Part shown: in pieces, positions 1-44,963 of the stretch
Position numbering within the stretch: position 1 is the stretch's first letter
How the letters are laid out: every line of letters begins with the position of its first letter
Sequence record: OR805292.1
DNA: 64,000 bases
Reading direction: 5' to 3' (one strand)
The notes under the pieces: model-generated
Seen by the model: the letters and a program-made list of their open reading frames with translations, nothing else
What the model was told of the DNA's origin: nothing
Database searches by the model: none
Translations under genes and position numbers: made by a program

Positions 1-380
1 TTAACGGGGTAGTAGTAGGGCAAGCTTTCCCGCTCTACAGCACAAAAACCCAGCGTAGCTGGAACGCGAGCATGCACGCTACCGTTAACGGCGTAGAGGT
101 GCAGTTTGCACAGGAAGGCGTGTTCAGTGCAATCCGCATTGCACGGGCGTTCGAGGATGCAGTAAAGCATGCCGTTAGCAACGGCGAACAAGGGCAACCC
201 CTCCCCGCGCCGGCGGCGGCAGAAGCGCAAGCAGAAGCGCAAGCAGAAGCGCAAGCAGAAGCCCCGGTAGCGCAGACCGAGGATGCGCCGGAGACCCCGG
301 CAGCCGAAGCTAAGCCCGCCCGCAAAGGCGGCAGCAAAGGCGGCAGCAAAGGCGGCAGCAAAGGCGGCAGCAAAAAGTAA
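1..380 (+). CDS. 5'-truncated early protein with Ala/Glu/Lys-rich low-complexity tail; paralog of 7188..7646
   Basis: Frame is open from the window edge (NGVVVGQAFPLYSTKTQRSWNASM...). It shares KTQRxW and GVFSAIRIARA with 7188..7646, is GC-rich in codon use, and has tandem AEAQ x3 and KGGS x4. Confidence 0.85.
   Translation, partial: NGVVVGQAFPLYSTKTQRSWNASMHATVNGVEVQFAQEGVFSAIRIARAFEDAVKHAVSNGEQGQPLPAPAAAEAQAEAQAEAQAEAPVAQTEDAPETPAAEAKPARKGGSKGGSKGGSKGGSKK
324..371 (+). repeat. 12-bp tandem repeat x4 (AAAGGCGGCAGC, encodes KGGS)
   Basis: Read directly. A second 12-bp repeat, GCAGAAGCGCAA x3, lies at 219-254. Confidence 0.95.
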
Positions 381-394
381 GCGCTGCTAACACA

Positions 395-422
395 GGAAAG
401 GGGCAACTGCCCCTTTCCTTTT
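395..422 (+). terminator. Rho-independent terminator (early-region GGGGC/GCCCC family)
   Basis: GGAAAGGGGC-AACT-GCCCCTTTCC followed by TTTT, directly after a stop codon. Confidence 0.9.
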
Positions 423-432
423 ATGTCCTAGT

Positions 433-459
433 TGTAAACGCAAATTAATCTTATTTGCA
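433..459. promoter_or_regulatory. 27-bp quasi-palindromic Fur-box-like site (representative of the family)
   Basis: TGTAAA-CGCAAAT-T-AATCTTA-TTTGCA. The half-site TCTTATTTGCA occurs 12 times exactly, in either orientation, between 449 and 8680. Confidence 0.75.
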
Positions 460-480
460 TTTGCACAAGTCAATCTCCGG

Positions 481-508
481 TTGCATTACTGCGGTAAGAT
501 GTTAGTAT
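481..508 (+). promoter_or_regulatory. sigma70-like early promoter
   Basis: TTGCAT-N16-TAGTAT with an extended TGn -10. It is repeated at 1358-1385, with a similar promoter near 2139-2166. Confidence 0.7.
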
Positions 509-534
509 ATATGTAGCTATACGGAGTAATTGCT

Positions 535-765
535 ATGAAGCGCAAGTACCTAAAGGCACAGTTCGAGCATGTCAGTGCCGGGCGAGTTGCAAAAGAACTC
601 GACGAGAAGTTCAATTTCGTTGTAGGCGATAATGTACACTACTGGGCCATCTTCGAAACTAATGTCAAACCCGAAGTTCTACAAAAGGCAATTCATGACA
701 TGAACGGTGGTGCTTACTGCCATGCATATTCTATTCCGTATGAGGATGTAGAGGAGTATCTCTAA
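535..765 (+). CDS. hypothetical early protein (76 aa)
   Basis: ORF with GGAG SD downstream of a promoter. Confidence 0.8.
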   Translation: MKRKYLKAQFEHVSAGRVAKELDEKFNFVVGDNVHYWAIFETNVKPEVLQKAIHDMNGGAYCHAYSIPYEDVEEYL

Positions 766-979
766 TGCTCTACTATCGCGATGTTTATGCAGGTGTTTGC
801 TGTTAAACTTGTATAGCCGGCACCAGGTCGCATATAACACGCCTAGCCCCATGCAAACTGCGGACATGATCCATTCACGCCTGCAGCGTATGTTCGAAGA
901 ATTCGGTTGCAAGCCCGATGGTTGCTCTGCTAGCATGTACGAGGATAAGACGCACATTACACTAGCCTGGAGCAAGTAA
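765..979 (+). pseudogene. probable frameshifted small gene (start 765 in one frame, body 797..979 in the -1 frame)
   Basis: GAGGAG SD plus a TAATG-coupled ATG at 765 gives only 13 aa. One extra T in the T run at 796-798 would join it to the 797..979 ORF. Confidence 0.45.
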
Positions 980-1270
980 ATGGATATGTCGATTGTGAAC
1001 AAGCGCTTCGAGAAAGAACTAGCGCTGTTTAATGTCGAAGTTCTCAGTAAGCGCACAGTGAATCATATAACGAAACCGAACATCGAAGTTTCGTTCAAAC
1101 TAAAGGGTCATACTACTGAAGAAGAGATGACCACTGTTACTCAGCTCGCACGTCCCATTATGGAGTATGTAAGCGGACGTAGGGTGGTCTGGGCACATAC
1201 CGGTCTTTGGCGCTCAATGAAAGACGACCTCGAAGTAGCAGTGCTGACAATGAAGTTATCCAAACAATAA
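980..1270 (+). CDS. hypothetical early protein (96 aa)
   Basis: ORF abutting the upstream stop, with GGAG SD, followed by a terminator. Confidence 0.8.
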   Translation: MDMSIVNKRFEKELALFNVEVLSKRTVNHITKPNIEVSFKLKGHTTEEEMTTVTQLARPIMEYVSGRRVVWAHTGLWRSMKDDLEVAVLTMKLSKQ

Positions 1271-1272
1271 GA

Positions 1273-1385
1273 GAAAGGGGCAACTGCCCCTTTCCTTTTA
1301 TGTCCTAGTTGTAAACGCAAATTAATCTTATTTGCATTTGCACAAGTCAATCTCCTGTTGCATTACTGCGATAAGATGTTAGTAT
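1273..1385 (+). repeat. 113-bp regulatory cassette copy 2
   Basis: Near-identical to 396-508. Confidence 0.95.
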
Positions 1386-1425
1386 GTGCTTGGCAGTAAC
1401 ACATAACTAGCAGGAGCAACAGACA

Positions 1426-1674
1426 ATGGCTAAAGTATTGCACGTTAACAGCATCGGCAACGTCGCCGAAGTGTTTACATCTGTAGACCTCGACAGCGCC
1501 TTGTTGCACGCAATCAAGCGCTGTGCAATGATGGGCAAGGTTAAGGTTGTCGGTCCCAACGCTCCCGTGTTTGCTAGCCACTACTACGCACTGAGAGCGT
1601 ACGACGTGCAGTGGCGCCTCGTTCCACCGGGCTGCGACGTTACTTTGTACGTCATCGCCGAGGACAACAACTAA
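1426..1674 (+). CDS. hypothetical early protein (82 aa)
   Basis: AGCAGGAG SD at 1409-1416. Confidence 0.8.
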   Translation: MAKVLHVNSIGNVAEVFTSVDLDSALLHAIKRCAMMGKVKVVGPNAPVFASHYYALRAYDVQWRLVPPGCDVTLYVIAEDNN

Positions 1675-1685
1675 GGAGAGACACC

Positions 1686-1988
1686 ATGAATCTCGTTCAT
1701 CTGTGGATCAACGGGCGTGTTGTGACTGCCCGCAAGGTTGTCAGTAAGCATACTGTCCGCAATCCGAACAGTCCGATCGATATCGAGACTATCGACGTTG
1801 TTCGACTGCGTCTGCCCCGCGGTGTGCGTGCTAGCAGTTGGGCACTCCGTAAGGCAGTGTACCAGCTCATGGAGCAAAGCTGTAGCTGCTCGAGAGACTG
1901 TTGTGGACACTGGTTCGGCGGCGCACGCAAGATCTACATTAAAGGCAGAGACGTCAGTGTAGTTGCCGGGTACCAGCGCAATTACTAA
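1686..1988 (+). CDS. hypothetical protein with CSCSRDCCGHW Cys cluster (100 aa)
   Basis: AGGAGAG SD precedes ATG 1686 (the track ORF start of 1611 is likely too long). A terminator follows at 1989-2018. Confidence 0.8.
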   Translation: MNLVHLWINGRVVTARKVVSKHTVRNPNSPIDIETIDVVRLRLPRGVRASSWALRKAVYQLMEQSCSCSRDCCGHWFGGARKIYIKGRDVSVVAGYQRNY

Positions 1989-2208
1989 AGGAAAGGGGGC
2001 AGTTGCCCCTTTCCTTTTATCCATTAATGTGCAAACGCGAATTATTCTTATTTGCACAGGGCAGTGAGATGCGAATGCAAATAAGAGGTATTCTTAATAC
2101 TGCCGGGTGATAAGAATTGTTCACAAAAAGAAAAAAGCTTGCATTATGCTACACAGGTGCTAGTATGTGTATTGCAGTACCTATAAACATTAATAGCAGG
2201 ATAAGAAA

Positions 2209-2529
2209 ATGGTTGACTTCAAAGGTTTTAACTGGGACGCACTAGTTCCAGAGGACAACGTTTCCACAGTTTCCATTAAAAATCACTACGAGGAACTCCT
2301 ACAAAGTTTTGTTGACAACGGCATAGACTATGTGTTAGTCCGGCTGTCCCAGGAACTGCCGCACTACGAGGATTCAGATTATCCCTGCTACAAATTGGTT
2401 GACAAGTATGCAGGATGGATAGTAGGCTGGGACTACTACGGATTTGTTGTGGAACGCATGGACACGCACCTTTTCTTTGACAACTGCACTGCAAAGGGTG
2501 TAATGGACTTCTTGGAAGCTAACGGCTAG
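2209..2529 (+). CDS. hypothetical acidic protein (106 aa)
   Basis: Promoter and AGGA SD upstream; terminator at about 2534-2564. Confidence 0.8.
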   Translation: MVDFKGFNWDALVPEDNVSTVSIKNHYEELLQSFVDNGIDYVLVRLSQELPHYEDSDYPCYKLVDKYAGWIVGWDYYGFVVERMDTHLFFDNCTAKGVMDFLEANG

Positions 2530-2750
2530 CACAAAAAAGGAAGGGGCGCAAGCCCTTTTCTTTTGTCTGCAATTTCTGTGCAAATAAGAACTATTACTGA
2601 TGTGGTAAAAGCACAATGCAAATAAGACGCATTCTTGATTAGGCCTGATAATAAGTTCTTATTAACAACAAAGAAACTGAATAAGAATAATTCTGAAAAA
2701 TAACCTGCAGCGTAACACAAATTTGCAAGCCCTTTTTAATATGCGTTTGT

Positions 2751-2810
2751 TAAGATTAGTTCTTATTTGTAATGATAATATCCCTGCCTTACAAATAAGA
2801 ACTAATCTTA
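2751..2810. repeat. perfect 22-bp inverted repeat with 16-nt spacer containing box variants
   Basis: TAAGATTAGTTCTTATTTGTAA (2751-2772) and TTACAAATAAGAACTAATCTTA (2789-2810). Confidence 0.95.
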
Positions 2811-2959
2811 GAACAAATATTCACTTGATTTTTCTCCCGATATAGTGTATGTGTATATTAGATAAGATTAAGTCTTGTTTGCTTGTTACATTTTATATGT
2901 TGCAATGCTAAGGCAATGACACTATTATATGTACAGCAACACAAAACAGGAGATATAAC

Positions 2960-3265
2960 ATGTCAGCAGAATTGAAGCGGTTGTTAGAGATTTTTCCAAC
3001 CTTTAAATCATTCATTTATGCTGAAGGGGCATATGGCATTGATGTTTGGAAGGCTACGGGTAGTGTTACTTTGGAACAGGTATTCAATGCTGTTAATGCA
3101 GGTAATGCAGAATGGCAATGTAAAGGTGATCCAACATGCAGCCTGGAACAAAACAGCATGTATATTTTTATTACTATTCGGGAACCAGACTACACAGGAA
3201 TGGTTGACATCGATGTTTGTGTAAAGATTACTAACGGTAATGAAGTAAGTTACCAAATAGCATAA
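2960..3265 (+). CDS. hypothetical protein (101 aa)
   Basis: CAGGAG SD; terminator at about 3268-3294. Confidence 0.8.
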   Translation: MSAELKRLLEIFPTFKSFIYAEGAYGIDVWKATGSVTLEQVFNAVNAGNAEWQCKGDPTCSLEQNSMYIFITIREPDYTGMVDIDVCVKITNGNEVSYQIA

Positions 3266-3401
3266 TAAAGGAAAGGGGCAACTGCCCTTTTTCTTATGAC
3301 CATTGATGCAAACTATTCTTATTTGCACATCAAAAAAATATCTATTGAATTCTATCAATATGATGCTATTATATATAGTGTAATTAACTAGGAGTAAAGT
3401 T

Positions 3402-3689
3402 ATGCAACCTCTAAAGCAATTGCCACAAAACTACGCAATAATCACTCCAACTAGTGTTACTAATTTTAACTGCACCTTTTCTCAAGCCTATTGCAGAATA
3501 AAAGCAGAATGCAAAAACGTTTTCTGCTGGGTTCGTTGGGGTGACCACGGCGTTGCAATGAAGCGCCGAATTGATCCACCGTATGTAGTGTATAGAAACA
3601 ACGGACGACAACGAAAAGTAGTTCTTGTAAACGTAGACAAAGCCCCTGTTAATTGGCAAGACGAACTTAAACAACTATACAAATGGTAA
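3402..3689 (+). CDS. hypothetical basic protein (95 aa)
   Basis: TAGGAG SD; terminator at 3692-3720. Confidence 0.8.
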   Translation: MQPLKQLPQNYAIITPTSVTNFNCTFSQAYCRIKAECKNVFCWVRWGDHGVAMKRRIDPPYVVYRNNGRQRKVVLVNVDKAPVNWQDELKQLYKW

Positions 3690-3691
3690 TT

Positions 3692-3720
3692 AAGAAAAGG
3701 GCTATAATAGCCCTTTTCTT
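3692..3720. terminator. symmetric Rho-independent terminator
   Basis: AAGAAAAGGGCTA-TAA-TAGCCCTTTTCTT. Confidence 0.9.
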
Positions 3721-3870
3721 ATGACCGTTAATGCAAACTATTCTTATTTGCACGATCCCGCACTTATAACACAAGTATGCTACAAAAGCAAGAATAAAAT
3801 TAACTTGACACCTATATGTAGAATATAGCACAATGTGTTTATAAATTATATTACTACAGGAGTGCTAACC

Positions 3871-4242
3871 ATGTTCAAATGCAAATTGTTTGTAGTAGAT
3901 CCTGTTTATAACAACCTTTGCTACACTCAACAAATATGGCTCGATAGTGACATAAATGTGTGTAGCCAAATAAAGCGTATTATTTCTGACGCAGAATTGG
4001 CATGCGCAAACAGGATAGTAAATAATCCTCATAGTCCGCTGTGCGTTAAATCGGCAGCATTAAAAATGGTTATGGACGGGCGCATTGACATCGAACTCAA
4101 AGATGTCGATAGTTACGTTGATCAATATAAAGACATTCTCCCTAGCACAAATATTTTGGGTGTTTTTAAACCGACGTTTTTATCTAACTGGAAAGAAGAG
4201 TGTGAACTTTATTTCCTCACTTGTGTTGAAAAAGACAATTAA
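3871..4242 (+). CDS. hypothetical protein (~123 aa)
   Basis: CAGGAG SD supports ATG 3871 over the track start of 3835. Confidence 0.75.
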   Translation: MFKCKLFVVDPVYNNLCYTQQIWLDSDINVCSQIKRIISDAELACANRIVNNPHSPLCVKSAALKMVMDGRIDIELKDVDSYVDQYKDILPSTNILGVFKPTFLSNWKEECELYFLTCVEKDN

Positions 4243-4253
4243 TATAATATAAT

Positions 4254-4541
4254 ATGGAAGATGATTTAAAAAATATTGTTTCGAAGACTATCTTATCTAA
4301 TAAAATTAAGATAGTCTCTTTACGTACTGTAGTAAAAACTCAGTATAAAAGAGTAGACTTCCATTATAAGATAGAATGTGAAAATAGTTCTACAAAACGT
4401 AATTTGGTATTTGCCCGTATATGCAAACCATTAGAACACACATTAGGTTCAAAACTTGTTTATGTAGATGTTGTGCCTATCAAGTTTAAGAAAGATGAAA
4501 TGCCATCTACTATTCTATCGGTAAGTGTAATGACTAGTTGA
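4254..4541 (+). CDS. hypothetical protein (95 aa)
   Basis: ORF directly downstream of the previous gene. Confidence 0.7.
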   Translation: MEDDLKNIVSKTILSNKIKIVSLRTVVKTQYKRVDFHYKIECENSSTKRNLVFARICKPLEHTLGSKLVYVDVVPIKFKKDEMPSTILSVSVMTS

Positions 4542-4692
4542 TATTTGGATTTTATATTTGGAAATATAATAGTAATTCTTATTTGCAATTATAATATATT
4601 CTTGTTTACTTTTAAAATAAAAGCAAATTCTAGTTGCATAGCTAGCGGCAATGTGCTAGTATATTAAAAAATAAAGACAGGAGTGTTATTAC

Positions 4693-4875
4693 ATGCAAAC
4701 CAAAGCAACCGAGTTGGCAGTAGGCGATGTTGTTTTCTACAATGGCATGAAAATGACTATCCAGAAAATTTCAAAAGGTCGGTGTGCAATAGATATTACA
4801 CTAGTAAATACTTTGGCTAAACTCACATCTTATGTGACAGTCGACTATGATGAAGAATTTGAAGAAGTATTATAA
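4693..4875 (+). CDS. small beta-rich (possibly SH3/KOW-like) protein (60 aa)
   Basis: CAGGAG SD; the ELAVGDVVFYNG pattern suggests the fold (inference). Confidence 0.7.
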   Translation: MQTKATELAVGDVVFYNGMKMTIQKISKGRCAIDITLVNTLAKLTSYVTVDYDEEFEEVL

Positions 4876-4893
4876 TGCAGAAATTATAGTCAT

Positions 4894-4920
4894 AAGAAAA
4901 GGGGCAATGCCCCTTTTCTT
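4894..4920. terminator. bidirectional terminator between convergent genes
   Basis: AAGAAAAGGGGCAATGCCCTTTTCTT. Confidence 0.85.
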
Positions 4921-5158
4921 ATAGTCCCAACAAATGTTTGCCACTTTTGACTTGCATCATACGTACTTTCTTTTTGCGCATTTGCGTTCTTACGTTCAGG
5001 CTGTTGGGACCTTTGAAGCTATACAGTATTTCAGTAGTCCCGTCTTCATAGTTGCGTACCACATTTGCAACAATTTGACTGCCTTCCTGGAACGCTTCGA
5101 TAAACACACAGTAATTGAAATTTTCCTTGTTAGCGTTATGTGCGCGTAGTTGCATCAT
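4919..5158 (-). CDS. hypothetical protein (79 aa), the only clear minus-strand early gene
   Basis: GCAGGAG SD on the minus strand, with a minus-strand TTGCAT..TACTAT promoter upstream. Confidence 0.75.
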   Translation of the reverse strand: MMQLRAHNANKENFNYCVFIEAFQEGSQIVANVVRNYEDGTTEILYSFKGPNSLNVRTQMRKKKVRMMQVKSGKHLLGL

Positions 5159-5512
5159 TTTCTGTTACTCCTGCGTTGTTTTGCTTTGTTATGTGTAGTA
5201 TACGCTATGTGTGTACTAATGCAAGAATTTTCTTCCATTTTCTTTCAAATAAAATGTTATTAGCATCTATTCTGTTATAACATTTTCTACAACTTCATGC
5301 TTTGCAAATAAGAATTAATCGCATTTGCATTCCTACCTATTTGCCTAAAATTTAGGCAGCCTGGGTGATTGTCTCCCCCTCCCTATTACTGGTCTCTGTA
5401 TAAAGATAATAGCATATTTGTATCTGCATGCAAGCATTTTTTTGTAGAATTTTCCTCTTGACATTCCTTGCTGTAGGCTACATTATGCACACACGAAGCA
5501 GGAGATACCATT

Positions 5513-5893
5513 ATGGCACTCATAGCATTAGTAGCAACTGCGTATGACAAAGAAGGCGATAAGTTCGACTATGTTCGATATCTTAAAGCTCATATCAATT
5601 TTGTTTCTGCTCAAGATCAACTGAAAGAATGGATCAAAAACAAAATTGATGCAAGTATAGCAGAAGTTAAAATCGGATTACGTGCAGAAATCGAAGTATT
5701 GGCCTATTTGGGAAACTATATAAGCCATAGTCAACGGATTATTAGTCCCGCCGGGATCATCATGTACATTGTTCTTGATGAGAAGTATGTTAATGAACTT
5801 CACGGTCAAATTTCTAATGCAATTGATTGTGAAGAAAAGAAACATGTAATAAAGAAAGAAGAAAACGTCACTTATATTGATTTTAAAAAATAA
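5513..5893 (+). CDS. hypothetical protein (126 aa)
   Basis: TTGACA promoter at 5458; AGCAGGAG SD. Confidence 0.8.
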   Translation: MALIALVATAYDKEGDKFDYVRYLKAHINFVSAQDQLKEWIKNKIDASIAEVKIGLRAEIEVLAYLGNYISHSQRIISPAGIIMYIVLDEKYVNELHGQISNAIDCEEKKHVIKKEENVTYIDFKK

Positions 5894-5929
5894 CTTGCAT
5901 TAGCTGTAATGTATATGTATTATGTACTC

Positions 5930-6086
5930 AAGTTTGCAGCAAGACGTATTAATTTGTTTTGCTGTTAGTTGTAACTCCTGCTACCAAGTATGTGTTGAGC
6001 TAATGCTCCTGACTTGGTTCTTGGTACACTGGTTTGGGTGTACCGTTCTTGAGCTGCAAAGGGCTTGCCCGGAGCAGCTTTTTTTT
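5930..6086 (+). ncRNA. candidate ~155-nt structured sRNA
   Basis: TTGCAT-N17-TATTAT promoter (5895-5923), no plausible ORF, stems 5936-5945/5956-5965, 5984-5989/6012-6017 and 6023-6029/6038-6044, and a terminator ending in T8. Confidence 0.65.
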
Positions 6087-6167
6087 GACTAATAATATTC
6101 ATTTGACAAAAAATAATAATTAAAAATATAATAGCTTAGTGTATAACTTTCCCATATTAGGCTAATT

Positions 6168-6539
6168 ATGAAATTTGTTATTGCTGCTATTGCATTGTCT
6201 TTGTCCACACTAGTTTCTGCAGAATCTATTTCTGAAGTTAAGATAACTAAAGAAACATGCCTTACACTTCTAGAATTATCTAAGATTCATGTTGATATGG
6301 TAGTAAATGAACATATGAATGCAATACAAATTGCATCTCATATGGATATTGTATCTAATTTGTATAAGAATAATAATAGTAAATGGCTTGCATTCTTGCA
6401 AGCTCAAGCAAATATTTCAAAATTAATTGATAACGTATATGAGTTTTCATCTACCGAAGAAAGAAAGATTATTCCTCTAGCCATATTTAACGGTTGTATG
6501 GAAAGAGTTGGTAATACTTTTGAAATATATAAGAAATAA
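6168..6539 (+). CDS. secreted/periplasmic protein with signal peptide (123 aa)
   Basis: MKFVIAAIALSLSTLVSA is a Sec-type signal; TTGACA-N18-TATAAT promoter at 6103-6132. Confidence 0.8.
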   Translation: MKFVIAAIALSLSTLVSAESISEVKITKETCLTLLELSKIHVDMVVNEHMNAIQIASHMDIVSNLYKNNNSKWLAFLQAQANISKLIDNVYEFSSTEERKIIPLAIFNGCMERVGNTFEIYKK

Positions 6540-6855
6540 TATGTATAATGTATATGTAGTCCATAGAATAGTCAATACAGGCGTTGAGACTAATATTTGC
6601 GATATAGAACGTTACGTTACAATTAACGACGTCGGTGCTATATCAAAGTTTCTTACTTTTAAAGAACATATAGCAGCAAACCCAAACTTATATATACGAT
6701 TAATTACTACTGGATTTAATACTAAAAAGAACATATTAGAATTAAATTTATCCAAAAAAGAATATGTAGTATCAGGTTTTAGAGTTACATCAACTAATAT
6801 AAATGAATGTATTGAATATTACCTGTGTAGAAGGATATTTAAGTTACATGATTGA
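6540..6855 (+). CDS. hypothetical protein (~105 aa; start probably ATG near 6541)
   Basis: Track ORF 6508..6855; an ATG follows the previous stop. Confidence 0.65.
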
Positions 6856-6973
6856 ATTTATATTAAAATCCCTTTTATTAACTTCAGTTGTCAGTGTTGG
6901 CATACTACTGTTATTCATTATTATTTCATTGTTAATGTTTGGCTTAGCACCGATAGTTCCATTCCTTATTTAA
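6848..6973 (+). CDS. 41-aa hydrophobic membrane peptide (not in ORF track)
   Basis: MIEFILKSLLLTSVVSVGILLLFIIISLLMFGLAPIVPFLI; its start overlaps the upstream stop. Confidence 0.6.
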   Translation: MIEFILKSLLLTSVVSVGILLLFIIISLLMFGLAPIVPFLI

Positions 6974-7187
6974 TTTTAATTATTTGCAAGCAAATGCAAA
7001 TGCGAATAATTCTTATTATCCAGCAGGCCACTGTACCTAATCTTCGTTAGATAAAATCTATTAGAATCTACAAAGTCCATTAAAACGTTCAATTGTACAT
7101 GGTGGCCAGATCTGCATATACTACACACATGAAGCAAGCAAACAGCGCTTCATAAACAAACCCAAATACAGCTAGGAGTTCCAAATC

Positions 7188-7646
7188 ATGACCAAAGCAA
7201 CCGTTACCGTCGAGCAATCCGCAATCAAACTGGTTCGCCGCAACCTGGAAGGGCACCGGCAAGCCCTGTTGCTGAACGGCGTCGAAGTAGGCAGCAGCGA
7301 AGCGTTCTACAAGACCAAAACCCAGCGCACCTGGTCGGCGAAGATCGACGCCAACATCAACGGCAAGGACATCGTCCTCGAACAGAAAGGCGTGTTCAGC
7401 GCGATCCGGATCGCCCGGGCGATGGAACAAGCAATCCTGTTCATCCTGACCGACGGCAAAGAAGGCGCCGAGATGCCGGCCAGCACGCTGAGCAAGGAAG
7501 AGCAAGCCCACAACCTGGTCAAGGCAGTAGTCCAGGTCGCCGGCCACGCAGTCCAGTCCGGCGCCGAGGGCAAGGGCGATGCCGACGCTGCCCCGGCGAA
7601 GAAAGGCAGCTCGAAGAAGCGCAAAGAAGCCCAGCCGGAAGCATAA
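7188..7646 (+). CDS. early protein, paralog of <1..380, GC-rich host-like codon usage
   Basis: AGGAG SD; shared GVFSAIRIARA block; basic Ala/Lys tail. Confidence 0.9.
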   Translation: MTKATVTVEQSAIKLVRRNLEGHRQALLLNGVEVGSSEAFYKTKTQRTWSAKIDANINGKDIVLEQKGVFSAIRIARAMEQAILFILTDGKEGAEMPASTLSKEEQAHNLVKAVVQVAGHAVQSGAEGKGDADAAPAKKGSSKKRKEAQPEA

Positions 7647-7660
7647 TCCGGACTACACCG

Positions 7661-7684
7661 AGAAAGCACCGAAAGGTGCTTTCT
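7661..7684 (+). terminator. terminator with GAAA tetraloop
   Basis: AGAAAGCACC-GAAA-GGTGCTTTCT. Confidence 0.9.
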
Positions 7685-7802
7685 CTATGACTGTTAATAG
7701 CAAATATTCTTATTTGCATCTAATCTGAAATAATAATAACTCTTATTTACAAATCATACTGAATACTGTATTTTACACACTAAACATTGTAGGTAATATA
7801 AA

Positions 7803-8291
7803 TTGAATATATTTGTGACTGACACAAATCCTTATATATGTGCCAAACATCATTGTGATATTCATCTAAGAAAGATGATAGTAGAAACAGCACAATTGTT
7901 AAGCACTACTCATTATATAATAAACGGATATACTCCTGCATATAAACCTACTCATAAAAATCACCCATGTGCCGTTTGGATTAGAGAAAGTTCAAATAAC
8001 TATAAATGGACTTATGAACTTCTTACAAGTCTTATAAATGAATTTGAATATAGATTTGACAAACAACATGCAACTAAAATTCACCTTTCGTCATTAAAAA
8101 CTATACCAAAACTCCCTAATATAGAAAGAACAGAGTTTGTCTTAGTTATGCCAGACGAATTTAAAACAGATAATGTAACACATTCATATCAGATATATTT
8201 GAATAACAAATTTAAAGAATGGGCATCGAGATCTAACAGACCCATTTATGCTACATATACAAAGACACCTAAACCATATTTTATTAGTTGA
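7803..8291 (+). CDS. pyrimidine-dimer DNA glycosylase / endonuclease V-like family protein
   Basis: MNIF..NP..CA..HCD.H..KM..E.AQLLST and YKPTH.NHPC..W.R.S..NY.W motifs. Confidence 0.85.
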   Translation: MNIFVTDTNPYICAKHHCDIHLRKMIVETAQLLSTTHYIINGYTPAYKPTHKNHPCAVWIRESSNNYKWTYELLTSLINEFEYRFDKQHATKIHLSSLKTIPKLPNIERTEFVLVMPDEFKTDNVTHSYQIYLNNKFKEWASRSNRPIYATYTKTPKPYFIS

Positions 8292-8363
8292 AATATAATA
8301 AAAATGATTGACACGTACATAAGATCACATTATGCTGTATAAAACAGCAAGGAGTAGATATAC

Positions 8364-8597
8364 ATGTACCGCAAACTGAATACAAATCCACGCCCAATGC
8401 CAAAAACAAAGGCAATTCCAACTAAATTTGTCATTCAGTACACTGCACGGAATAAAGCAACAGAAAGTTTGTTCAAAAAAAGAACTATTACATTACATGC
8501 GTTTGGGCGTCTCGATGCACAAACACTCCTATCAAAACATATCCGAAAAAATAATTTGGAATTAGGTGTAATTATTGATTTCGGTGAAACAGTTTAG
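8364..8597 (+). CDS. hypothetical basic protein (77 aa)
   Basis: TTGACA promoter at 8308, AAGGAG SD, terminator at 8608-8633. Confidence 0.8.
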   Translation: MYRKLNTNPRPMPKTKAIPTKFVIQYTARNKATESLFKKRTITLHAFGRLDAQTLLSKHIRKNNLELGVIIDFGETV

Positions 8598-8762
8598 TTA
8601 GTGACTAAGGAAAGGGGGCAATACCCCTTTCCTATTATTAAGTCAAATGCAAATGCAAATACAAATTATTCTTATTTGCATAGATCAGACCCTGTTGTAT
8701 TCTCCATTACGTGGTGCTACACTGTAAACAGTTGCACAAAACCATAAGCAGGAGTGTTAAAA

Positions 8763-9059
8763 ATGAACCAAGTGAATAACACCGAAGAGATGGCGTACAT
8801 CCGCAATCTGCTTCAGTCTGAAGATGCAGTAAAATACTTTGCTCGCAAAGTCAACGACCTCATCGGCAAAGAGGCATTCGAGCGGCTCCTTAACGGCTTG
8901 TCCTACGAGGAGAATGTGGCACTGAACCTGATGATCGAAAACAATCTCGTTAGCTTGCACAGCGATGGCTTTGTCGGTATCAAGTTCGATCTCAAACTGG
9001 AAGACGTGCGGTCAGACGTCGACTTCACCAACGAAGGCTTCGAGCTAGAGGAAGAGTGA
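8763..9059 (+). CDS. hypothetical acidic protein (~98 aa)
   Basis: AGCAGGAG SD fits ATG 8763; GC-rich codons. Confidence 0.8.
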   Translation: MNQVNNTEEMAYIRNLLQSEDAVKYFARKVNDLIGKEAFERLLNGLSYEENVALNLMIENNLVSLHSDGFVGIKFDLKLEDVRSDVDFTNEGFELEEE

Positions 9060-9196
9060 TGGCTTACTACAATGAATTCTGAATACTGAAAAGTGCCTAA
9101 GAAGTAATTCCAGTTGTATCTAAAACACTATGTGTTATTATACATATAGTGTTTTTATTTCTTATAATTATATTCAATAATAATGGTAAAACATAT

Positions 9197-9520
9197 ATGA
9201 TTGAAGTAATTAAATGCATTATATGTAATGAATCACCCCGTCCCGGTGCATTTGCAGCATTTATTACTCAAATGCGTCAAGTAGTAAAACCTCATGCAAC
9301 TATAACTAGTTGGAATATTCTGCCCGGCATTAATGATGATCCAACTAGTTATATTCATGCATTCAGTATAAAATCAAAAACAGCATACAACATTAATCAA
9401 GCTGTTACCTTATTACTAATGTCATTATATAATGCTAGTGAACATAAAACTAGTTATATACCTACTTCGTTTAAAGACTATGAATCTACAATAAAGCATT
9501 TATCTAAGATCAAACAATAG
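9197..9520 (+). CDS. hypothetical protein with CxxC (~107 aa)
   Basis: The ATG at 9197 lies within track ORF 9149..9520. Confidence 0.65.
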   Translation: MIEVIKCIICNESPRPGAFAAFITQMRQVVKPHATITSWNILPGINDDPTSYIHAFSIKSKTAYNINQAVTLLLMSLYNASEHKTSYIPTSFKDYESTIKHLSKIKQ

Positions 9521-9584
9521 CCAGTTGCATATTTACAAATATACATGTATGCTAATGCATATACACAATTATGAGTACATTATC

Positions 9585-9743
9585 ATGACAAAAGAAATTG
9601 CTTTTACTGAAGGATTAAAAGCAGGCACTCAAATAAAAGAAGGCAAAGCTATCCTAACTGACTTCTTTCGATATTTCAATTCCTTACCAACTAATATGAG
9701 AACTTCTTTTATTATCGGTATCAAAACCGGTAGAAACTATTAA
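9585..9743 (+). CDS. small hypothetical protein (~52 aa)
   Basis: In-frame ATG within track ORF 9525..9743. Confidence 0.55.
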   Translation: MTKEIAFTEGLKAGTQIKEGKAILTDFFRYFNSLPTNMRTSFIIGIKTGRNY

Positions 9744-9827
9744 GCATATTAATTTTTATATTTTGGTAGACAAAGGTACTCACTGGATGCATACTGTATA
9801 CATACAGAACATACGGAGTACAAAGGG

Positions 9828-10097
9828 ATGGATGCGCGTAGCCTGCTTAACCTTATCGAAGACCTCCCTATAGCTGTCTTCGGTAGCACAATGGATATTG
9901 TTCATCGAGTCAATTTTGAAGCTCTGGACAATGCCGCTCACACCGACGGGGTAAAAGTCCACGAAGATGGAACCAACCGTTATACGGACGCTTTTGTCGA
10001 TTGTTGGCTCTGCAGCGTCGAAACAATTTTGGCCTGTTGCGATTTTGTGACTGAGGACGCAGCGAAGTGGTATATCGAGCACGGTGTCAAGTTTTGA
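9828..10097 (+). CDS. hypothetical protein (89 aa)
   Basis: GGAG SD; plausible codon usage. Confidence 0.75.
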   Translation: MDARSLLNLIEDLPIAVFGSTMDIVHRVNFEALDNAAHTDGVKVHEDGTNRYTDAFVDCWLCSVETILACCDFVTEDAAKWYIEHGVKF

Positions 10098-10127
10098 CAT
10101 CCTCTGCCTCGCTTGCAGATAAAAAGG

Positions 10128-10156
10128 TTGACGTAGACTAGCATTGGACACATAAT
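10128..10156 (+). promoter_or_regulatory. sigma70 promoter, second class (AAGGTTGACGT...CATAAT)
   Basis: TTGACG-N17-CATAAT; sister copy TTGACG-N18-CATAAT at 11214-11243. Confidence 0.75.
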
Positions 10157-10210
10157 AATCACAACACAGCGCAACACAATGCAACGCAACCAGCCCAGGA
10201 GGGCAAAACT

Positions 10211-10360
10211 ATGTGCAACATCCAATGCATGAACAGCAAAGCAGGCGAGTCCTACGCATGGATTTGGAGCGATAGTGATAACGATATCTGCTACGAAGTC
10301 ATCTTCAGGCATGGCCAGGTCATTACCCAGGTTTGGCTCGGCTATGATATTGTAGCCTAA
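10211..10360 (+). CDS. 49-aa hypothetical protein (not in track)
   Basis: CAGGAGG SD; MCNIQCMNSKAGESYAWIW...; terminator at 10369-10393. Confidence 0.65.
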   Translation: MCNIQCMNSKAGESYAWIWSDSDNDICYEVIFRHGQVITQVWLGYDIVA

Positions 10361-10409
10361 CACCAACTAAAGCCCCGTCCCAGGCGGGGCTTTACCGAAG
10401 GAAAAGATC

Positions 10410-10619
10410 ATGATCGAACAACTGAAAGACATGCTCGTAGCGCAACGCATGCGCATGAACCAACTCGAAAAACTGCGCTACACCGGACGGGTCGCTAGCG
10501 AGTTGCATGCCCACGCCAGGGAATTGTGTGAAGCCTTGGAACTGGCAATTGCAAATGCCCAGTGCCTGGAAATGCGCAAGCCCGAAGAAGCCGCCCTGCA
10601 CGCCCTGTTCGCACAATAA
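10410..10619 (+). CDS. small coiled-coil protein (69 aa)
   Basis: AAGGA SD; GC-rich. Confidence 0.75.
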   Translation: MIEQLKDMLVAQRMRMNQLEKLRYTGRVASELHAHARELCEALELAIANAQCLEMRKPEEAALHALFAQ

Positions 10620-10652
10620 CCCACCACGCACAACCCGACAAGGAAACCAACC

Positions 10653-11144
10653 ATGAGCACCACAATCCCTGTTTCGATTAACCCAAGTGATCTTCCTGAA
10701 ATCGGCCAGCCGCTGGCCGATGGAACCTTCTTTGCCCGCCAATGGCTCAATGGCAAGGAATACGCCTACGTCGATCTCGGCAAAAGCGCCGAGTTCACTG
10801 GAGAATGGGGCGAGTATGGGCAGGACGTGGTCGGCGCCGTCAGCTATCGAGACGGAGCTTCGAACACGGTCGCCATGGCTGAAGCTGGCAGCCCGATTGC
10901 TAAGCAAGCTATGGAGATCGGAGAAGGCGTATTCATTCCCTCTGTTCTGGAACTGGCTCTTCTGTTCTCCGCCAAGCAAGCAGGCGAGCTGTCTGGTTTC
11001 GCAGATCGCTGGTACTGGTCGAGTTCGCAGTACTCCGCATGCGGCGCCTTCAACACGCACCTCGGCGACGGTGACACAGGTCTCGACCCCAAGTACGTCT
11101 ACTTCCGTGTCCGACCCGTCCGCAAGATTCTCATCCTTCAGTAA
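10653..11144 (+). CDS. DUF1566 / Lcl C-terminal (C-type-lectin-fold-like) protein
   Basis: FIPS..EL, WYWSSSQYS and terminal FRVRPVR motifs, typical of the family seen in Pseudomonas temperate phages. Confidence 0.85.
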   Translation: MSTTIPVSINPSDLPEIGQPLADGTFFARQWLNGKEYAYVDLGKSAEFTGEWGEYGQDVVGAVSYRDGASNTVAMAEAGSPIAKQAMEIGEGVFIPSVLELALLFSAKQAGELSGFADRWYWSSSQYSACGAFNTHLGDGDTGLDPKYVYFRVRPVRKILILQ

Positions 11145-11282
11145 TATAGCCCCGGCGAGCAAACATTGCTCGGAAGGTGCTAACTGAACGACTGGCGGAA
11201 CAATAAATAAAGGTTGACGTGCGTCTAGCGGCGGATGCATAATAGCTACAAGACAACACAGCAAGCCCCGGAGGGCGCAACC

Positions 11283-11483
11283 ATGTCCCAGATCGTAGAT
11301 GTCAAGCAAATTGCAATTGATGCAAACCGTCGCCCGGCCTACAATGCGGTCATGGTGCGCTGGTTGATGCAGGAAGCTGAATTGCACCGTAGCTGCGGAC
11401 GCACCGCTACCCTGTTCTGCATCGTTCGCAACCGCCCCGACGGCACACAGCGCCAGCTTGTGCAGCTTGTGGCTAGCGAATAA
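11283..11483 (+). CDS. hypothetical protein (~66 aa)
   Basis: GGAGG SD supports MSQIVDVK over the track start of 11235. Confidence 0.7.
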   Translation: MSQIVDVKQIAIDANRRPAYNAVMVRWLMQEAELHRSCGRTATLFCIVRNRPDGTQRQLVQLVASE

Positions 11484-11513
11484 CCTCAATCACCCTACGC
11501 CCAGGAGACCGCC

Positions 11514-11681
11514 ATGAACGCCGCATTGGCCAGACTTCAAAACGAGCGCTGTGTGCTACTCCGCCGCATGCTTTGCCTTCATCGGTGGGGTGGCTTTAGC
11601 TTTGCCGGCCACCCGTGGGCGGAGCAAGCCCGCAGTTTGCACGACGAAGCCGAGTGCGTCCGAGAACATCACAGTAAGTAA
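11514..11681 (+). CDS. 55-aa hypothetical protein (not in track)
   Basis: CAGGAG SD; MNAALARLQNERCVLLRR...HHSK. Confidence 0.65.
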   Translation: MNAALARLQNERCVLLRRMLCLHRWGGFSFAGHPWAEQARSLHDEAECVREHHSK

Positions 11682-11715
11682 TCCAATCCCACTGGATCTT
11701 ACTGAGGATAAGATA

Positions 11716-11817
11716 ATGACCTACGCAGAACTAATAAAGAAACTACATAACATAGAAGCTTGTCATTATCTTTCCAATAATGAAGTTAATTTTCAAAACG
11801 CAGGAGAACTAAAATGA
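11716..11817 (+). CDS. 33-aa peptide
   Basis: GAGGA SD; ATGA-coupled to the next ORF. Confidence 0.5.
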   Translation: MTYAELIKKLHNIEACHYLSNNEVNFQNAGELK

Positions 11818-12110
11818 ATTGCGAACATTTTTTCCTCAGTGCAGTAAAAGAACTTCTGTCCCTGTACCACATTAAGAGTACTATTCAACCGTCTTCTGAT
11901 AACCTCGAAGAATTGGTAGTAGTTATTACTGATACTGCTTTTGGTACTATCAGATATGTTGGCAATAACACTGGATCAGTTATGTGTTATACTATGGGCG
12001 GTAATTACCCGTTCTATGACACTGAGTGTTATTCCAACCGAACTATGATAGATTGTGTTATGTTGATATCAGTTTGGTATTCAATGTTCCCGACATTCGA
12101 TAATAAGTAA
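11814..12110 (+). CDS. hypothetical protein (98 aa)
   Basis: CAGGAG SD. Confidence 0.75.
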   Translation: MNCEHFFLSAVKELLSLYHIKSTIQPSSDNLEELVVVITDTAFGTIRYVGNNTGSVMCYTMGGNYPFYDTECYSNRTMIDCVMLISVWYSMFPTFDNK

Positions 12111-12368
12111 TATAATGGTTGCTCTATATAGTGTATGATGTTAGTTGTATACTATATAGAATAATTCTATTAACTGGGAGGGATTAATAAAAATATTTTC
12201 TTGACAATAGCAGGTATAGGATAATTCTATTATACTGAAAATTGTTATAGAAAAATATAGTTGACAAATTTTGAAAGTGATGAATTCCAACACCGGGTGG
12301 CTGTAAGCTGAGACGGTTGACATTCGGTGGGTGGTGGATTGTTACGCGGGTAGATTTTGAAATTCACC

Positions 12369-12516
12369 GTCTATAGGTTCGTCTATAGGTCCACTTATAA
12401 GTCACTTTCATTTATAACACTTCCGTCTATAGGTTCACTTATAAGTCACTTTCATTTATAAGTCATTTATAACACTTTAGTCTATAGGTTCGTCTATAGG
12501 TTCACTTATAAGTCAC
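12369..12516. repeat. non-coding short-repeat array A
   Basis: GTCTATAGGT x5 (12369, 12381, 12425, 12480, 12492) and CACTTATAAGTCAC x3 (12392, 12436, 12503). Confidence 0.9.
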
Positions 12517-44952: not shown

Positions 44953-44963
44953 AAGGATTTAAA

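Follow-up and report, generated by a model that had tools for sequence, protein, structure and literature searches.

Several described systems place one short operator at many sites, or one compact cassette between many small genes. The OB sites of KorB in IncP plasmids and the C1 operators of phage P1 are dispersed global operators served by a known repressor that the element itself encodes. In both, one short operator is repeated over a genome segment, singly and in pairs, at variable distances from promoters. Fur, in Pseudomonas aeruginosa and other proteobacteria, recognizes a 19-bp box (GATAATGATAATCATTATC) composed of hexamers in F-F-x-R phasing, and as a repressor it usually sits over the core promoter. 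Fur can also act from upstream as an activator or anti-silencer, as at E. coli ftnA, where it opposes H-NS, and at the Fur-activated promoters of Neisseria. Finally, the promoter-early stem-loop (PeSL) cassettes of T4-type phages (Arbiol 2010; Comeau 2014) consist of an A3-4G3-4-loop-C3-4T3-4 stem-loop terminator followed closely by a sigma-70-like early promoter, a Shine-Dalgarno sequence and a start codon (definition from PMC4122927). Such cassettes recur between the small ORFans of hyperplastic regions and bound indels and replacements between sister phages, and the DNA between two of them can be excised as mini-circles.

The window analyzed here, a stretch of 64,000 nt from record OR805292.1, belongs to the Pseudomonas jumbo phage Cassandra, a PA5oct-like phage with a genome of 288 kb. 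As the preliminary description stated, the 11-mer TCTTATTTGCA occurs in it 12 times (Table 1), against a chance expectation of 0.07 and with none of 100 shuffles reaching 12. The variant copies it listed are likewise present, and its observation that the array ends before 9 kb holds, as the rest of the window gives only chance-like matches with one or two mismatches. However, the array also extends upstream past the window start and is therefore larger than could be seen at that time. The whole Cassandra genome carries 19 exact copies, all within 166,708-194,680, and when the entire 288 kb is searched with a box matrix at a threshold of at least 12 bits, 46 of 47 matches (about 32 distinct sites) fall inside this same 28-kb zone.

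This zone is part of the 39-kb terminal repeat, which carries 105 small genes, and it coincides with DTR genes gp34-gp105. In PA5oct, RNA-seq has shown that these genes are highly transcribed at 5 min and that the box-bearing part of the repeat belongs to the early program read by host RNA polymerase; rifampicin blocks phage production (PMC7318152). The array occupies the whole early portion of the terminal repeat, a point not made previously. The claim that the boxes are always intergenic stands against the RNA-seq-curated annotation of PA5oct. In the automated Cassandra record, small, probably spurious ORFs cover several boxes.

Table 1. Boxes, terminators, promoters and GC-rich paralogs in the first 9 kb of the window. 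The 11-mer column gives the start (plus strand) or span (minus strand) of exact copies of TCTTATTTGCA; copies with one mismatch are marked.
Feature	Position	Strand	11-mer	Remarks
GC-rich paralog 2, 3' part	1..380	+		start in L003; triple-box cluster upstream, L003 45438-45516
Intrinsic terminator	394..424	+		AAAGGGGC-loop-GCCCCTTT type
Box TGTAAACGCAAATTAATCTTATTTGCA	433..459	+	449	21 nt before -35 at 481
Early promoter, sigma-70 type	481..508	+		TTGCAT-N16-(TG)nTAGTAT
Terminator, same type	1273-1300			
Box	1310..1336	+	1326	identical copy; in 124-bp direct-repeat cassette; 21 nt before -35 at 1358
Early promoter, sigma-70 type	1358-1385	+		
Terminator, same type	1993-2018			
Box TGCAAACGCGAATTATTCTTATTTGCA	2030..2056	+	2046	top matrix score, 38 bits; left junction of Callisto deletion
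Box, reverse orientation	2076..2102	-	2076-2086	19 nt from 2030..2056 box, outward-facing pair
Early promoter, sigma-70 type	2139-2166	+		
Terminator, same type	2539-2566			
Half-box, strong arm only	2579..2605	-	2579-2589	in 430-bp multi-box intergenic region 2530-2959
Half-box, strong arm only	2617..2643	-	2617-2627	direct repeat of 2579..2605, 38 nt apart
Variant box TCTTATTTGTA	2745..2771	+	2761 (1 mismatch)	right junction of Callisto deletion
Variant box TCTTATTTGTA	2790..2816	-	2790 (1 mismatch)	inverted partner of 2761, 18-nt spacer
Early promoter, sigma-70 type	2900-2928	+		
Terminator, same type	3271-3295			
Box	3301..3327	+	3317	17 nt before -35 at 3345; cassette missing in PA5oct, Ettore and Callisto
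Early promoter, sigma-70 type	3345-3372	+		
Terminator, same type	3693-3720			
Box	3726..3752	+	3742	homology to PA5oct, Ettore and Callisto breaks at 5' edge of 11-mer
Early promoter, sigma-70 type	3805-3834	+		
Box, strong arm only	4561..4587	+	4577	no preceding terminator; 46 nt before -35 at 4634
Early promoter, sigma-70 type	4634-4662	+		
Bidirectional terminator	4891-4923			
Early promoter, sigma-70 type	5197-5224	-		
Near-perfect palindrome TGCAAATGCGATTAATTCTTATTTGCA	5303..5329	-	5303-5313	divergent region; faces minus-strand gene 5158-4919
Degenerate box TGCAAATGCGAATAATTCTTATTATCC	6995..7021	+		further TGCAAAT repeats starting at 6978; precedes GC-rich paralog gene 7188
Early promoter, sigma-70 type	7093-7122	+		
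GC-rich paralog 3, 152 aa	7188..7646	+		beta-rich N-domain, acidic linker, basic tail
Terminator, same type	7661-7686			
Box	7692..7718	+	7708	follows terminator 7661-7686
Variant box TCTTATTTACA	7725..7751	+	7741 (1 mismatch)	20 nt before -35 at 7772
Early promoter, sigma-70 type	7772-7799	+		
Terminator, same type	8612-8636			
Box TGCAAATACAAATTATTCTTATTTGCA	8654..8680	+	8670	14 nt before -35 at 8695; homology of three relatives stops 11 nt past box
Early promoter, sigma-70 type	8695-8723	+		

Each box is embedded in a compact terminator-box-promoter cassette that resembles a PeSL, which the preliminary description did not note, although it correctly placed most boxes just past a terminator and ahead of the next -35 element. 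The early promoters of PA5oct have been described (PMC7318152). At six promoters the box ends 14-21 nt before the -35, and at five others the distance is 36-83 nt. The boxes lie approximately 50-90 bp upstream of start sites. At none of these 11 promoters does any box overlap the -35 or -10. This anatomy speaks against classical Fur repression by occlusion of the promoter, but not against an action from upstream.

As in T4-type phages, terminator, promoter, Shine-Dalgarno sequence and start codon form a compact repeated unit that is concentrated among small ORFans of a hyperplastic region, here 28 kb of the 39-kb terminal repeat. The likeness has limits, because PeSLs have been described with sequence that is broadly AT-rich ahead of the -35 and not with a discrete invariant box, whereas in Cassandra, which is only distantly related to T4, the box is the most conserved element of the cassette.

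The cassettes also bound differences between sister phages, as PeSLs do. Comparison of Cassandra with PA5oct, MIJ3, Ettore and Callisto gives five indel boundaries, all of which lie on cassette elements, and two are inside or at the edge of the 11-mer. The boundaries of the intervals 518-1272, 2057-2754, 3279-3739 and 8692-9058 are all located on such elements. The boxes mark recombination junctions between the sister phages, another feature absent from the earlier account. The box is retained in two divergent metagenomic relatives. One (L128) is 75-85% identical to Cassandra at the nucleotide level and has nine exact copies in 7 kb, and the other (L132) has the box even though its genes share almost no nucleotide similarity with those of Cassandra.

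The element had been presented as a 27-bp palindrome, which is true of the consensus and of a few sites. Well-formed palindromes are found at 2030-2056, 5303-5329 and 8654-8680, and three more lie in tandem at 26708-26843 of L003. Most sites are imperfect palindromes in which one arm is degenerate. The strong arm, (A)ATTCTTATTTGCA, is near-invariant, whereas the weak arm reads tGCAAAyrmrAAT. Over its 11-13 nt the strong arm is 100% identical amid unrelated flanks, and its information content is sharp-edged. In full, the layout is T[GCAAAy][rmrAAT]T[ATTCTT][ATTTGC]A, and its four hexamers are phased F-F-x-R-R, as in an extended Fur box.

The resemblance to Fur sites that was originally proposed is upheld by quantitative comparison. 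Simple counting had made Fur look weak, with identity to the Fur consensus at only 10-13 of 19 positions. Scored with a matrix derived from 29 P. aeruginosa Fur sites that were defined by experiment, however, the boxes reach a median of 11.2 bits, which is within the range of true sites left out in turn (12.2 bits; IQR 8.3-15.3) and above the 99th percentile of phage background (6.5 bits). No column-permuted matrix matched the box score (0 of 500 for this matrix; 0 of 2000 for a 15-site version), and only 0.035-0.4% of arm-permuted palindromes scored equally well (palindrome-preserving null, p ~4e-4 to 4e-3). A Fur box is expected to have, within 19 bp, three or more NATWAT hexamers phased F-F-x-R. 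The phage box shares the hexamer arrangement nnnAAT/ATTnnn around a single central base, and G can open its forward hexamers. By the 15-site matrix, 12 of 14 informative Fur positions agree, including G1, G7, A10, T12, A14 and T16. The correlation between the box and Fur matrices peaks at r=0.66 and 0.64 in registers 6 bp apart, corresponding to two overlapping 19-mers as in extended Fur operators. Where the weak arm varies, it uses alternatives that Fur also accepts (position 6, T/C; position 11, A/T; position 14, A/G). Natural sites reading GAGAAT-N-ATT, as cited in the preliminary description, are consistent with the P. aeruginosa site table. A Fur protein has been crystallized on TTAATTGCAAATCATTTGCAATTGC, which shares the half-site TGCAAAT with the box (PMC4506495).

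Other details fit Fur less well. Arg57 of Fur contacts a conserved G at position 7, the first base of the second hexamer, and the base symmetric to it. This G is present in 23 of 29 true Fur sites, whereas the strong arm always has A there; in the weak arm, 12 of 30 sites have G and the other 18 have A. At position 19 the box has T where Fur has C, although G and C are present in the outer hexamers, GCAAAT and ATTTGC. The strong arm is far more uniform than the sites of a regulon, being fixed even at hexamer positions 3 and 9, for which the Fur matrix shows no preference. Together with the A at position 7, this uniformity fits a reader more specific than Fur. Sixteen equally good Fur-matrix matches are scattered outside the box zone, a sign of limited matrix selectivity on AT-rich sequence, and the gene contexts of the 14 bacterial matches are only partly iron-related.

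Given these observations, we tentatively favor, on the basis of sequence comparison, the hypothesis that Fur binds the boxes upstream of early promoters and modulates them. The boxes would be protein-binding operators within modular cassettes that drive the early terminal-repeat genes transcribed by host RNA polymerase. The protein most likely to occupy them would be iron-bound host Fur, which is in the cell before the DNA enters, and which might bind as pairs of dimers on the two overlapping 19-bp sites. Because the boxes lie off the -35 and -10, Fur would not obstruct polymerase. From its upstream position it might instead activate transcription, set a boundary or counter silencing of this AT-rich DNA, thereby coupling the strength of early transcription to the iron state of the host. 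The sequences show the array, its confinement to the early part of the repeat, the cassette layout, the recombination junctions, retention in divergent relatives and a likeness to Fur sites at the level of the matrix; that Fur binds, in which direction it would act and how strongly are inferences. The three roles suggested in the preliminary description (titration, iron-responsive early genes and anti-silencing) are likewise hypothetical. The ftnA and Neisseria precedents similarly have Fur sites upstream of promoters on silencing-prone AT-rich DNA, but these are single host promoters, whereas the putative array would serve about 30 phage promoters. The box might also be the crossover point at which early gene cassettes are shuffled among related phages, since it is the longest identical stretch common to otherwise unrelated cassettes. 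It is tempting to speculate, with less than even confidence, that a strictly lytic jumbo phage ties about 30 early promoters to the iron regulator of its host through approximately 64 extended Fur operators per packaged genome, such that the start of infection senses iron or escapes silencing, while the same box doubles as a crossover site.

PA5oct-like phages are candidates for therapy, and Paride and Cassandra form the sole group isolated so far that replicates on deep-dormant P. aeruginosa. One conserved operator fronting most early transcription units offers a direct handle on the early program, and the roughly 32 natural sites with their natural variants constitute a ready test set. If Fur reads the box, phage take-over would be tied to host iron status, which is relevant in iron-poor infection sites. 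This would be unusual for a lytic phage and, to our knowledge, the first Fur-operator array in one.

The main rival, a serious one that is only somewhat less probable, was the fallback of the preliminary description. Here a sequence-specific phage protein, synthesized early or brought in with the virion, would use the box as its operator and activate early promoters or later shut them down. The exactness of the strong arm, maintained in divergent relatives, exceeds what a degenerate host matrix would lead one to expect, and the invariant A at Fur position 7 points the same way, as does the orientation of single sites in Cassandra, 14 of 14 of which face the gene downstream. The orientation is reversed, however, in the relative L132. 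The arrangement would recall the KorB and C1 operators, although the sequences are unrelated and the phage annotation includes no regulator besides a late sigma factor, with no HTH or Fur-like protein.

The sole candidate in hand for such a reader is the GC-rich paralog family, whose members are candidate box-associated proteins linked to the box by position. Multi-box clusters lie upstream of five of the seven family genes, in three lineages, a pattern suggestive of autoregulation. In PA5oct one of the paralogs is a virion protein and could therefore be present at time zero. Against this, searches of Pfam and PHROGs returned no match and no DNA-binding domain for the family, its AlphaFold N-domain (pLDDT ~85) has no significant structural match, and the relatives L129 and L130 have a family gene but no box was found in them. 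The Fur likeness would also have to be a coincidence, by convergence on an AT-rich hexamer-phased palindrome, despite the low probability of this under the palindrome-preserving null. If a phage or virion protein does read the box, it would be the missing early regulator of this phage family.

It is quite unlikely that Fur binds but the array functions mainly as a decoy. The sites, doubled by the terminal repeat and multiplied by replication, would sequester Fur and thereby release the host iron regulon from repression, to the benefit of iron-demanding phage enzymes such as the class I ribonucleotide reductase that the phage encodes. The same matrix evidence and the location of the sites in non-coding gaps are compatible with this proposal. 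A pure decoy, though, leaves the tight spacing to promoters and terminators unexplained, and by our rough estimate, rather than by computation, a low-copy array would titrate a small share of an abundant regulator. Published PA5oct RNA-seq comes from iron-replete LB only, and the strong expression of early genes in that medium also counts against the favored Fur reading. So does the silence of the PA5oct transcriptome and host-response paper, in its main text, on iron, pyoverdine and siderophores, which is in addition weak evidence against strong Fur titration.

Least probable of all is that the box has no dedicated binding protein and is kept solely as the crossover core of a PeSL-like mobile cassette gained and lost by short homology or an unknown site-specific recombinase, because, well as this suits the indel boundaries and the published cassette layout, homology exchange neither needs nor alone maintains 11 exact nucleotides amid random flanks across approximately 20% and deeper divergence, no recombinase is linked to the array, and the specific match to the Fur matrix would go unexplained. 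Under either reader, Fur or a phage protein, the box explains where relatives exchange early gene cassettes.

A palindromic box is confined to one early region of the genome of Cassandra, a PA5oct-like Pseudomonas phage. The preliminary description had placed 12 exact copies of the 11-mer TCTTATTTGCA in the window, and all 12 are found where it put them (0.07 expected). When the Cassandra genome is read piecewise, each of the 19 exact copies falls between positions 166,708 and 194,680, a 28-kb zone of the terminal repeat. A genome-wide count, which that description had proposed, bears out this restriction. Using a 27-column matrix built from the box sites, we found 47 matches scoring at least 12 bits, 46 of which are located in the zone and represent about 32 distinct sites. 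The strong arm, (A)ATTCTTATTTGCA, is nearly invariant, and the weak arm is degenerate (tGCAAA, T/C, A/G, A/C, G/A/T, AAT), the first A of its AAT being shared by all 30 sites. Information content falls to about 0.1-0.3 bits just outside these 27 bases. The palindrome is a property of the consensus: most sites combine a strong and a weak arm, and a few have a strong arm only.

Window positions 1-9500 correspond to Cassandra OR805292.1 186,001-195,500 (100% identity) and are 96-97% identical to PA5oct, MIJ3, Paride, Ettore, Deifobo, Callisto, and other jumbo phages of the genus Wroclawvirus. The counterpart of this stretch in PA5oct falls within the terminal repeat (39,080 bp as annotated), where position 28,040 matches window base 1 and the repeat ends near window position 12,340. 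That repeat carries 105 genes, and transcription at 5 min is high for most of gp34-gp105, nearly all on the Watson strand (PMC7318152). The zone begins just past the equivalent of PA5oct ncRNA001 and ends ~3.6 kb short of the repeat end, and it is therefore inside this early, highly transcribed block. Because rifampicin abolishes PA5oct phage production (PMC7318152), transcription can be assigned to host RNA polymerase. The same study lists sigma-70-like promoters and terminators without any palindromic box, and our full-text literature search returned nothing relevant to the motif. The ncRNA001 homolog itself, with its terminator, occupies positions 26300-26850 of L003, the piece of Cassandra read 5' of the window (Cassandra 166,300-166,850). 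It is followed by direct repeats of roughly 30 nt (ttccttattcatctctatttcatttat...) and then by three full palindromic boxes in tandem, spaced 47 bp apart. A distant relative, L129, has a syntenic ncRNA and repeat region, and boxes are absent there.

The box is the central element of a terminator-box-promoter cassette. The strong arm is located 20-34 nt past a terminator (AAAGGGGC-loop-GCCCCTTT) and 14-21 nt (36-83 nt in some cassettes) before a promoter resembling TTGCAT-N16-TGnTAGTAT, which is followed by a Shine-Dalgarno sequence and an ATG. Boxes are present at 11 of the ~16 promoters predicted in the first 9.2 kb of the window. Among single sites in Cassandra, the strong arm is towards the downstream gene in 14 of 14 cases, and two reversed sites adjoin probable minus-strand genes. 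The T4-type PeSL (Arbiol and Comeau) has the same layout, stem sequence included, and in both systems cassettes delimit the stretches in which sister genomes differ.

Some classes of element can be set aside. A sigma-54 promoter is ruled out because there is no GG at -24, and a MotA-box-like middle promoter is unlikely because a -10 element does not recur consistently 11-13 nt past the box. An RNA element was likewise rejected, given the lack of an Rfam match over window positions 1-12,500, the location past terminators, and the use of both strands.

Comparisons among the 96-97% identical relatives have little power at such divergence: pooled boxes exhibit 3.9% mismatches versus 3.45% for other intergenic DNA, and thus no extra conservation. 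A per-box tally for the same relatives gives only a single mismatch among about 370 aligned cells for nine primary boxes, versus that 3.45%, and weak arms vary more (7.1% mismatches). Two divergent metagenomic contigs that we reached via a GC-rich protein family, L128 and L132, provide the stronger evidence. L128 (7.2 kb, 48% G+C) carries homologous ORFs at 75-85% nucleotide identity and nine exact 11-mers in the layout seen in Cassandra. L132 (4.2 kb) has nearly no nucleotide similarity to Cassandra, and its boxes read TGCAAATGCGAATTAATCTTATTTGC(G/A), with the orientation to the promoter reversed in two of three. Such exact arm retention amid unrelated flanks suggests selection on the sequence itself, and it points to a protein that reads the box as the simplest account. 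A scan of IMG/VR with a 14-mer gave single chance matches only, and a scan with the two-arm pattern gave no match.

We tentatively favor the possibility that host Fur binds the box and modulates early promoters from upstream. The preliminary description had likened the core to a Fur box, and this resemblance holds when it is quantified. Matches to the 19-mer Fur consensus GATAATGATAATCATTATC number only 10-13 of 19 per box (background mean 9). We abandoned the "not Fur" reading of this count, which is too blunt a measure, when it was overturned by matrix tests. A log-odds matrix was built from 29 P. aeruginosa Fur sites that have been defined experimentally and are tabulated in the supplement to a study of Fur-DNA structures (PMC4506495), with the phage's own AT-rich composition as background. 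The median score for 27 boxes is 11.2 bits, versus 12.2 bits for true sites left out in turn (interquartile range 8.3-15.3), and random phage windows of 35 bp have a mean of -3.3 bits (99th percentile 6.5). No column-permuted matrix equalled the observed median (0 of 500 for the 29-site matrix and 0 of 2000 for a 15-site version), and permuting the arm positions while keeping the palindrome gave an equal Fur score in only 0.035-0.4% of trials. Furthermore, the box and Fur matrices correlate best, column by column, in two registers exactly 6 bp apart and symmetric around the box center, with r=0.66 for one strand and r=0.64 for the opposite strand. From these results, the box can be read as four hexamers in an F-F-x-R-R array, T[GCAAAy][rmrAAT]T[ATTCTT][ATTTGC]A. 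It agrees with the 15-site matrix at 12 of 14 informative Fur positions, and the weak-arm alternatives are those of true Fur sites (T/C at position 6, A/T at 11, A/G at 14). A coincidental match is unlikely, even with so many host motifs available for comparison. A Fur protein has been crystallized on TTAATTGCAAATCATTTGCAATTGC, and Fur recognition is described as involving a single G, a single T, and a minor groove that is narrow and AT-rich, so that specificity is degenerate (PMC4506495).

Searching one genome per bacterial species for the two-arm pattern yielded 14 single genomic matches, where a rough estimate based on uniform composition predicts about 0.5, and 12 of these are in Gamma- or Betaproteobacteria. 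One precedes a TonB-dependent receptor gene by 48 bp and another is upstream of a DUF4198 gene, and these two are the only ones with a clearly iron-linked neighbor. The other neighbors are mostly not obviously iron-related, or the locus ends beside the match. The matches are suggestive only as support for Fur, and those at loci L143 and L144 are probably ordinary host Fur boxes.

Several observations count against Fur. The strong arm is fixed where true Fur sites vary freely, and it always has an A at Fur position 7, where 23 of the 29 true sites have a G. Sites under Fur selection alone should drift within the matrix, and this invariance argues against Fur, as does the position of the boxes, all of them clear of -35 and -10 elements. 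In addition, early genes show strong expression in iron-replete LB, and iron, pyoverdine, and siderophores go unmentioned in the main text of the PA5oct study (PMC7318152). Finally, sixteen Fur-matrix matches of equal quality are scattered elsewhere in the genome.

Somewhat less probable, and still a serious possibility, is that a phage or virion protein reads the box. Over-conservation of the strong arm and placement upstream of promoters are to be expected of a dedicated reader. Perhaps such a reader belongs to the GC-rich family, whose three paralogs in the zone are about 55-60% G+C in a 33% G+C phage. Each is preceded by a multi-box cluster, as are the homologs on L128 and L132, and mass spectrometry places the PA5oct ortholog of the first paralog among the virion proteins. 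PA5oct gp38, gp86, and gp98 are members of the family. The paralogs share a conserved ~90-aa N-domain with TQRTW and VFSAIRI motifs, followed by an acidic Pro/Ala linker and a short basic tail. An exhaustive profile search of 1.8 billion representative proteins recovered just 17 relatives, most of them encoded in metagenomes or by these phages, and AlphaFold (14-sequence alignment) confidently predicts that the N-domain comprises six strands and one helix. However, the family has no match in Pfam, PHROGs, or a PDB sequence search, and Foldseek with the N-domain found nothing significant in the PDB and only the family's own members in BFVD. More distant relatives also have the GC-rich gene and lack the box. 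The link between the family and the box is therefore positional only. In-frame tandem repeats at window positions 195-375 (GCAGAAGCGCAA units, then GGCGGCAGCAAA units) encode the (AEAQ)n and (KGGS)n tails of the second paralog, and the metagenomic homolog P0008 has a different number of copies.

It is improbable that the array, when bound by Fur, acts as a decoy. If this role and promoter modulation are taken together, binding by host Fur might be considered about an even proposition. The analysis demonstrates the cassette structure, the confinement to the early repeat, the recombination junctions, and the conservation; statements on binding and its effect are inferences.

Recombination alone, in the absence of any binder, is less probable again. 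Junctions among sister phages coincide with cassettes and twice with 11-mers, and the box is therefore a crossover point. However, a crossover role leaves the persistent identity of the box unexplained. The 124-bp direct repeat (394-517 and 1271-1393) spans a whole terminator-box-promoter cassette, and the genes at 535-1270 between its copies are missing in PA5oct and MIJ3. Other host factors take up the remaining probability; IHF, Fis, TyrR, PurR-type, and DnaA-box motifs do not appear to fit in sequence or spacing and serve as leads only.

Locations of indels, GC-rich paralogs, box clusters, and bacterial matches (window coordinates unless a handle is given)
Feature	Location	Details
Indel	518-1272	Absent in PA5oct and MIJ3; flanked by two 124-bp direct-repeat cassettes
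Indel	2057-2754	Callisto deletion; crossover within 11-mers of boxes 2046 and 2761
Indel	3279-3739	75 bp instead in PA5oct, Ettore, and Callisto; junctions at terminator and exact 5' edge of 11-mer 3742
Indel	8692-9058	Absent in three phages; begins 11 nt past box 8670
First GC-rich paralog	L003 27206-27910
Box cluster before first paralog	L003 26708-26843	Three tandem full palindromes
GC-rich paralog ending at 380 (starts in L003)	1-380
Box cluster before paralog ending at 380	L003 45438-45516	Three boxes
GC-rich paralog	7188-7646
Box cluster before paralog 7188-7646	6978-7021	Degenerate
Box cluster before homolog	L128 2692-2805	Five boxes
Box cluster before homolog	L132 3188-3295
Near-identical 27-mers, bacterial genomes	L143 5234-5258; L144 5755-5779	e.g., ATGCAAATAATAATAATTCTTATTTGCAT

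Fur boxes, PeSL cassettes, and dispersed global operators are each of an already known kind. Undescribed in the literature searched are an invariant Fur-type box at the core of PeSL-like cassettes, the presence of about 32 box copies in the terminal repeat of a lytic jumbo phage, and the conservation of the box across divergent relatives.

Several other features of the region were noted. Patches of about 51% G+C at window positions 1-2000 and 10000-12000, in surroundings of 28-37% G+C, suggest recently acquired terminal-repeat genes. In the automated annotation of Cassandra_0373 to 0407 (window 1-9500), many small ORFs are on the wrong strand or span terminators, boxes, and promoters (e.g., 35-406 minus, 2003-2110, 3296-3391, and 8601-8747); the RNA-seq-curated PA5oct record is free of such calls. 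The ORF at 7803-8291, labelled "DNA binding protein" in GenBank records, has matches to pyrimidine-dimer DNA glycosylases in both Pfam (Pyr_excise, below cut-off) and PHROGs (phrog_624, 1e-51) and is not likely to be a regulator. Genome-wide, the only annotated transcription factor is a gp55-like late sigma factor (44,610-45,452), which adjoins SbcCD-like nuclease genes. Lastly, window positions 5895-6092, annotated as a 56-aa ORF in Cassandra and as nothing in PA5oct, have no Rfam match and might encode a small RNA, with a promoter (TTGCAT-N17-TATTAT), four hairpins, a terminator with a T-run, and a folding z-score of -3.75.
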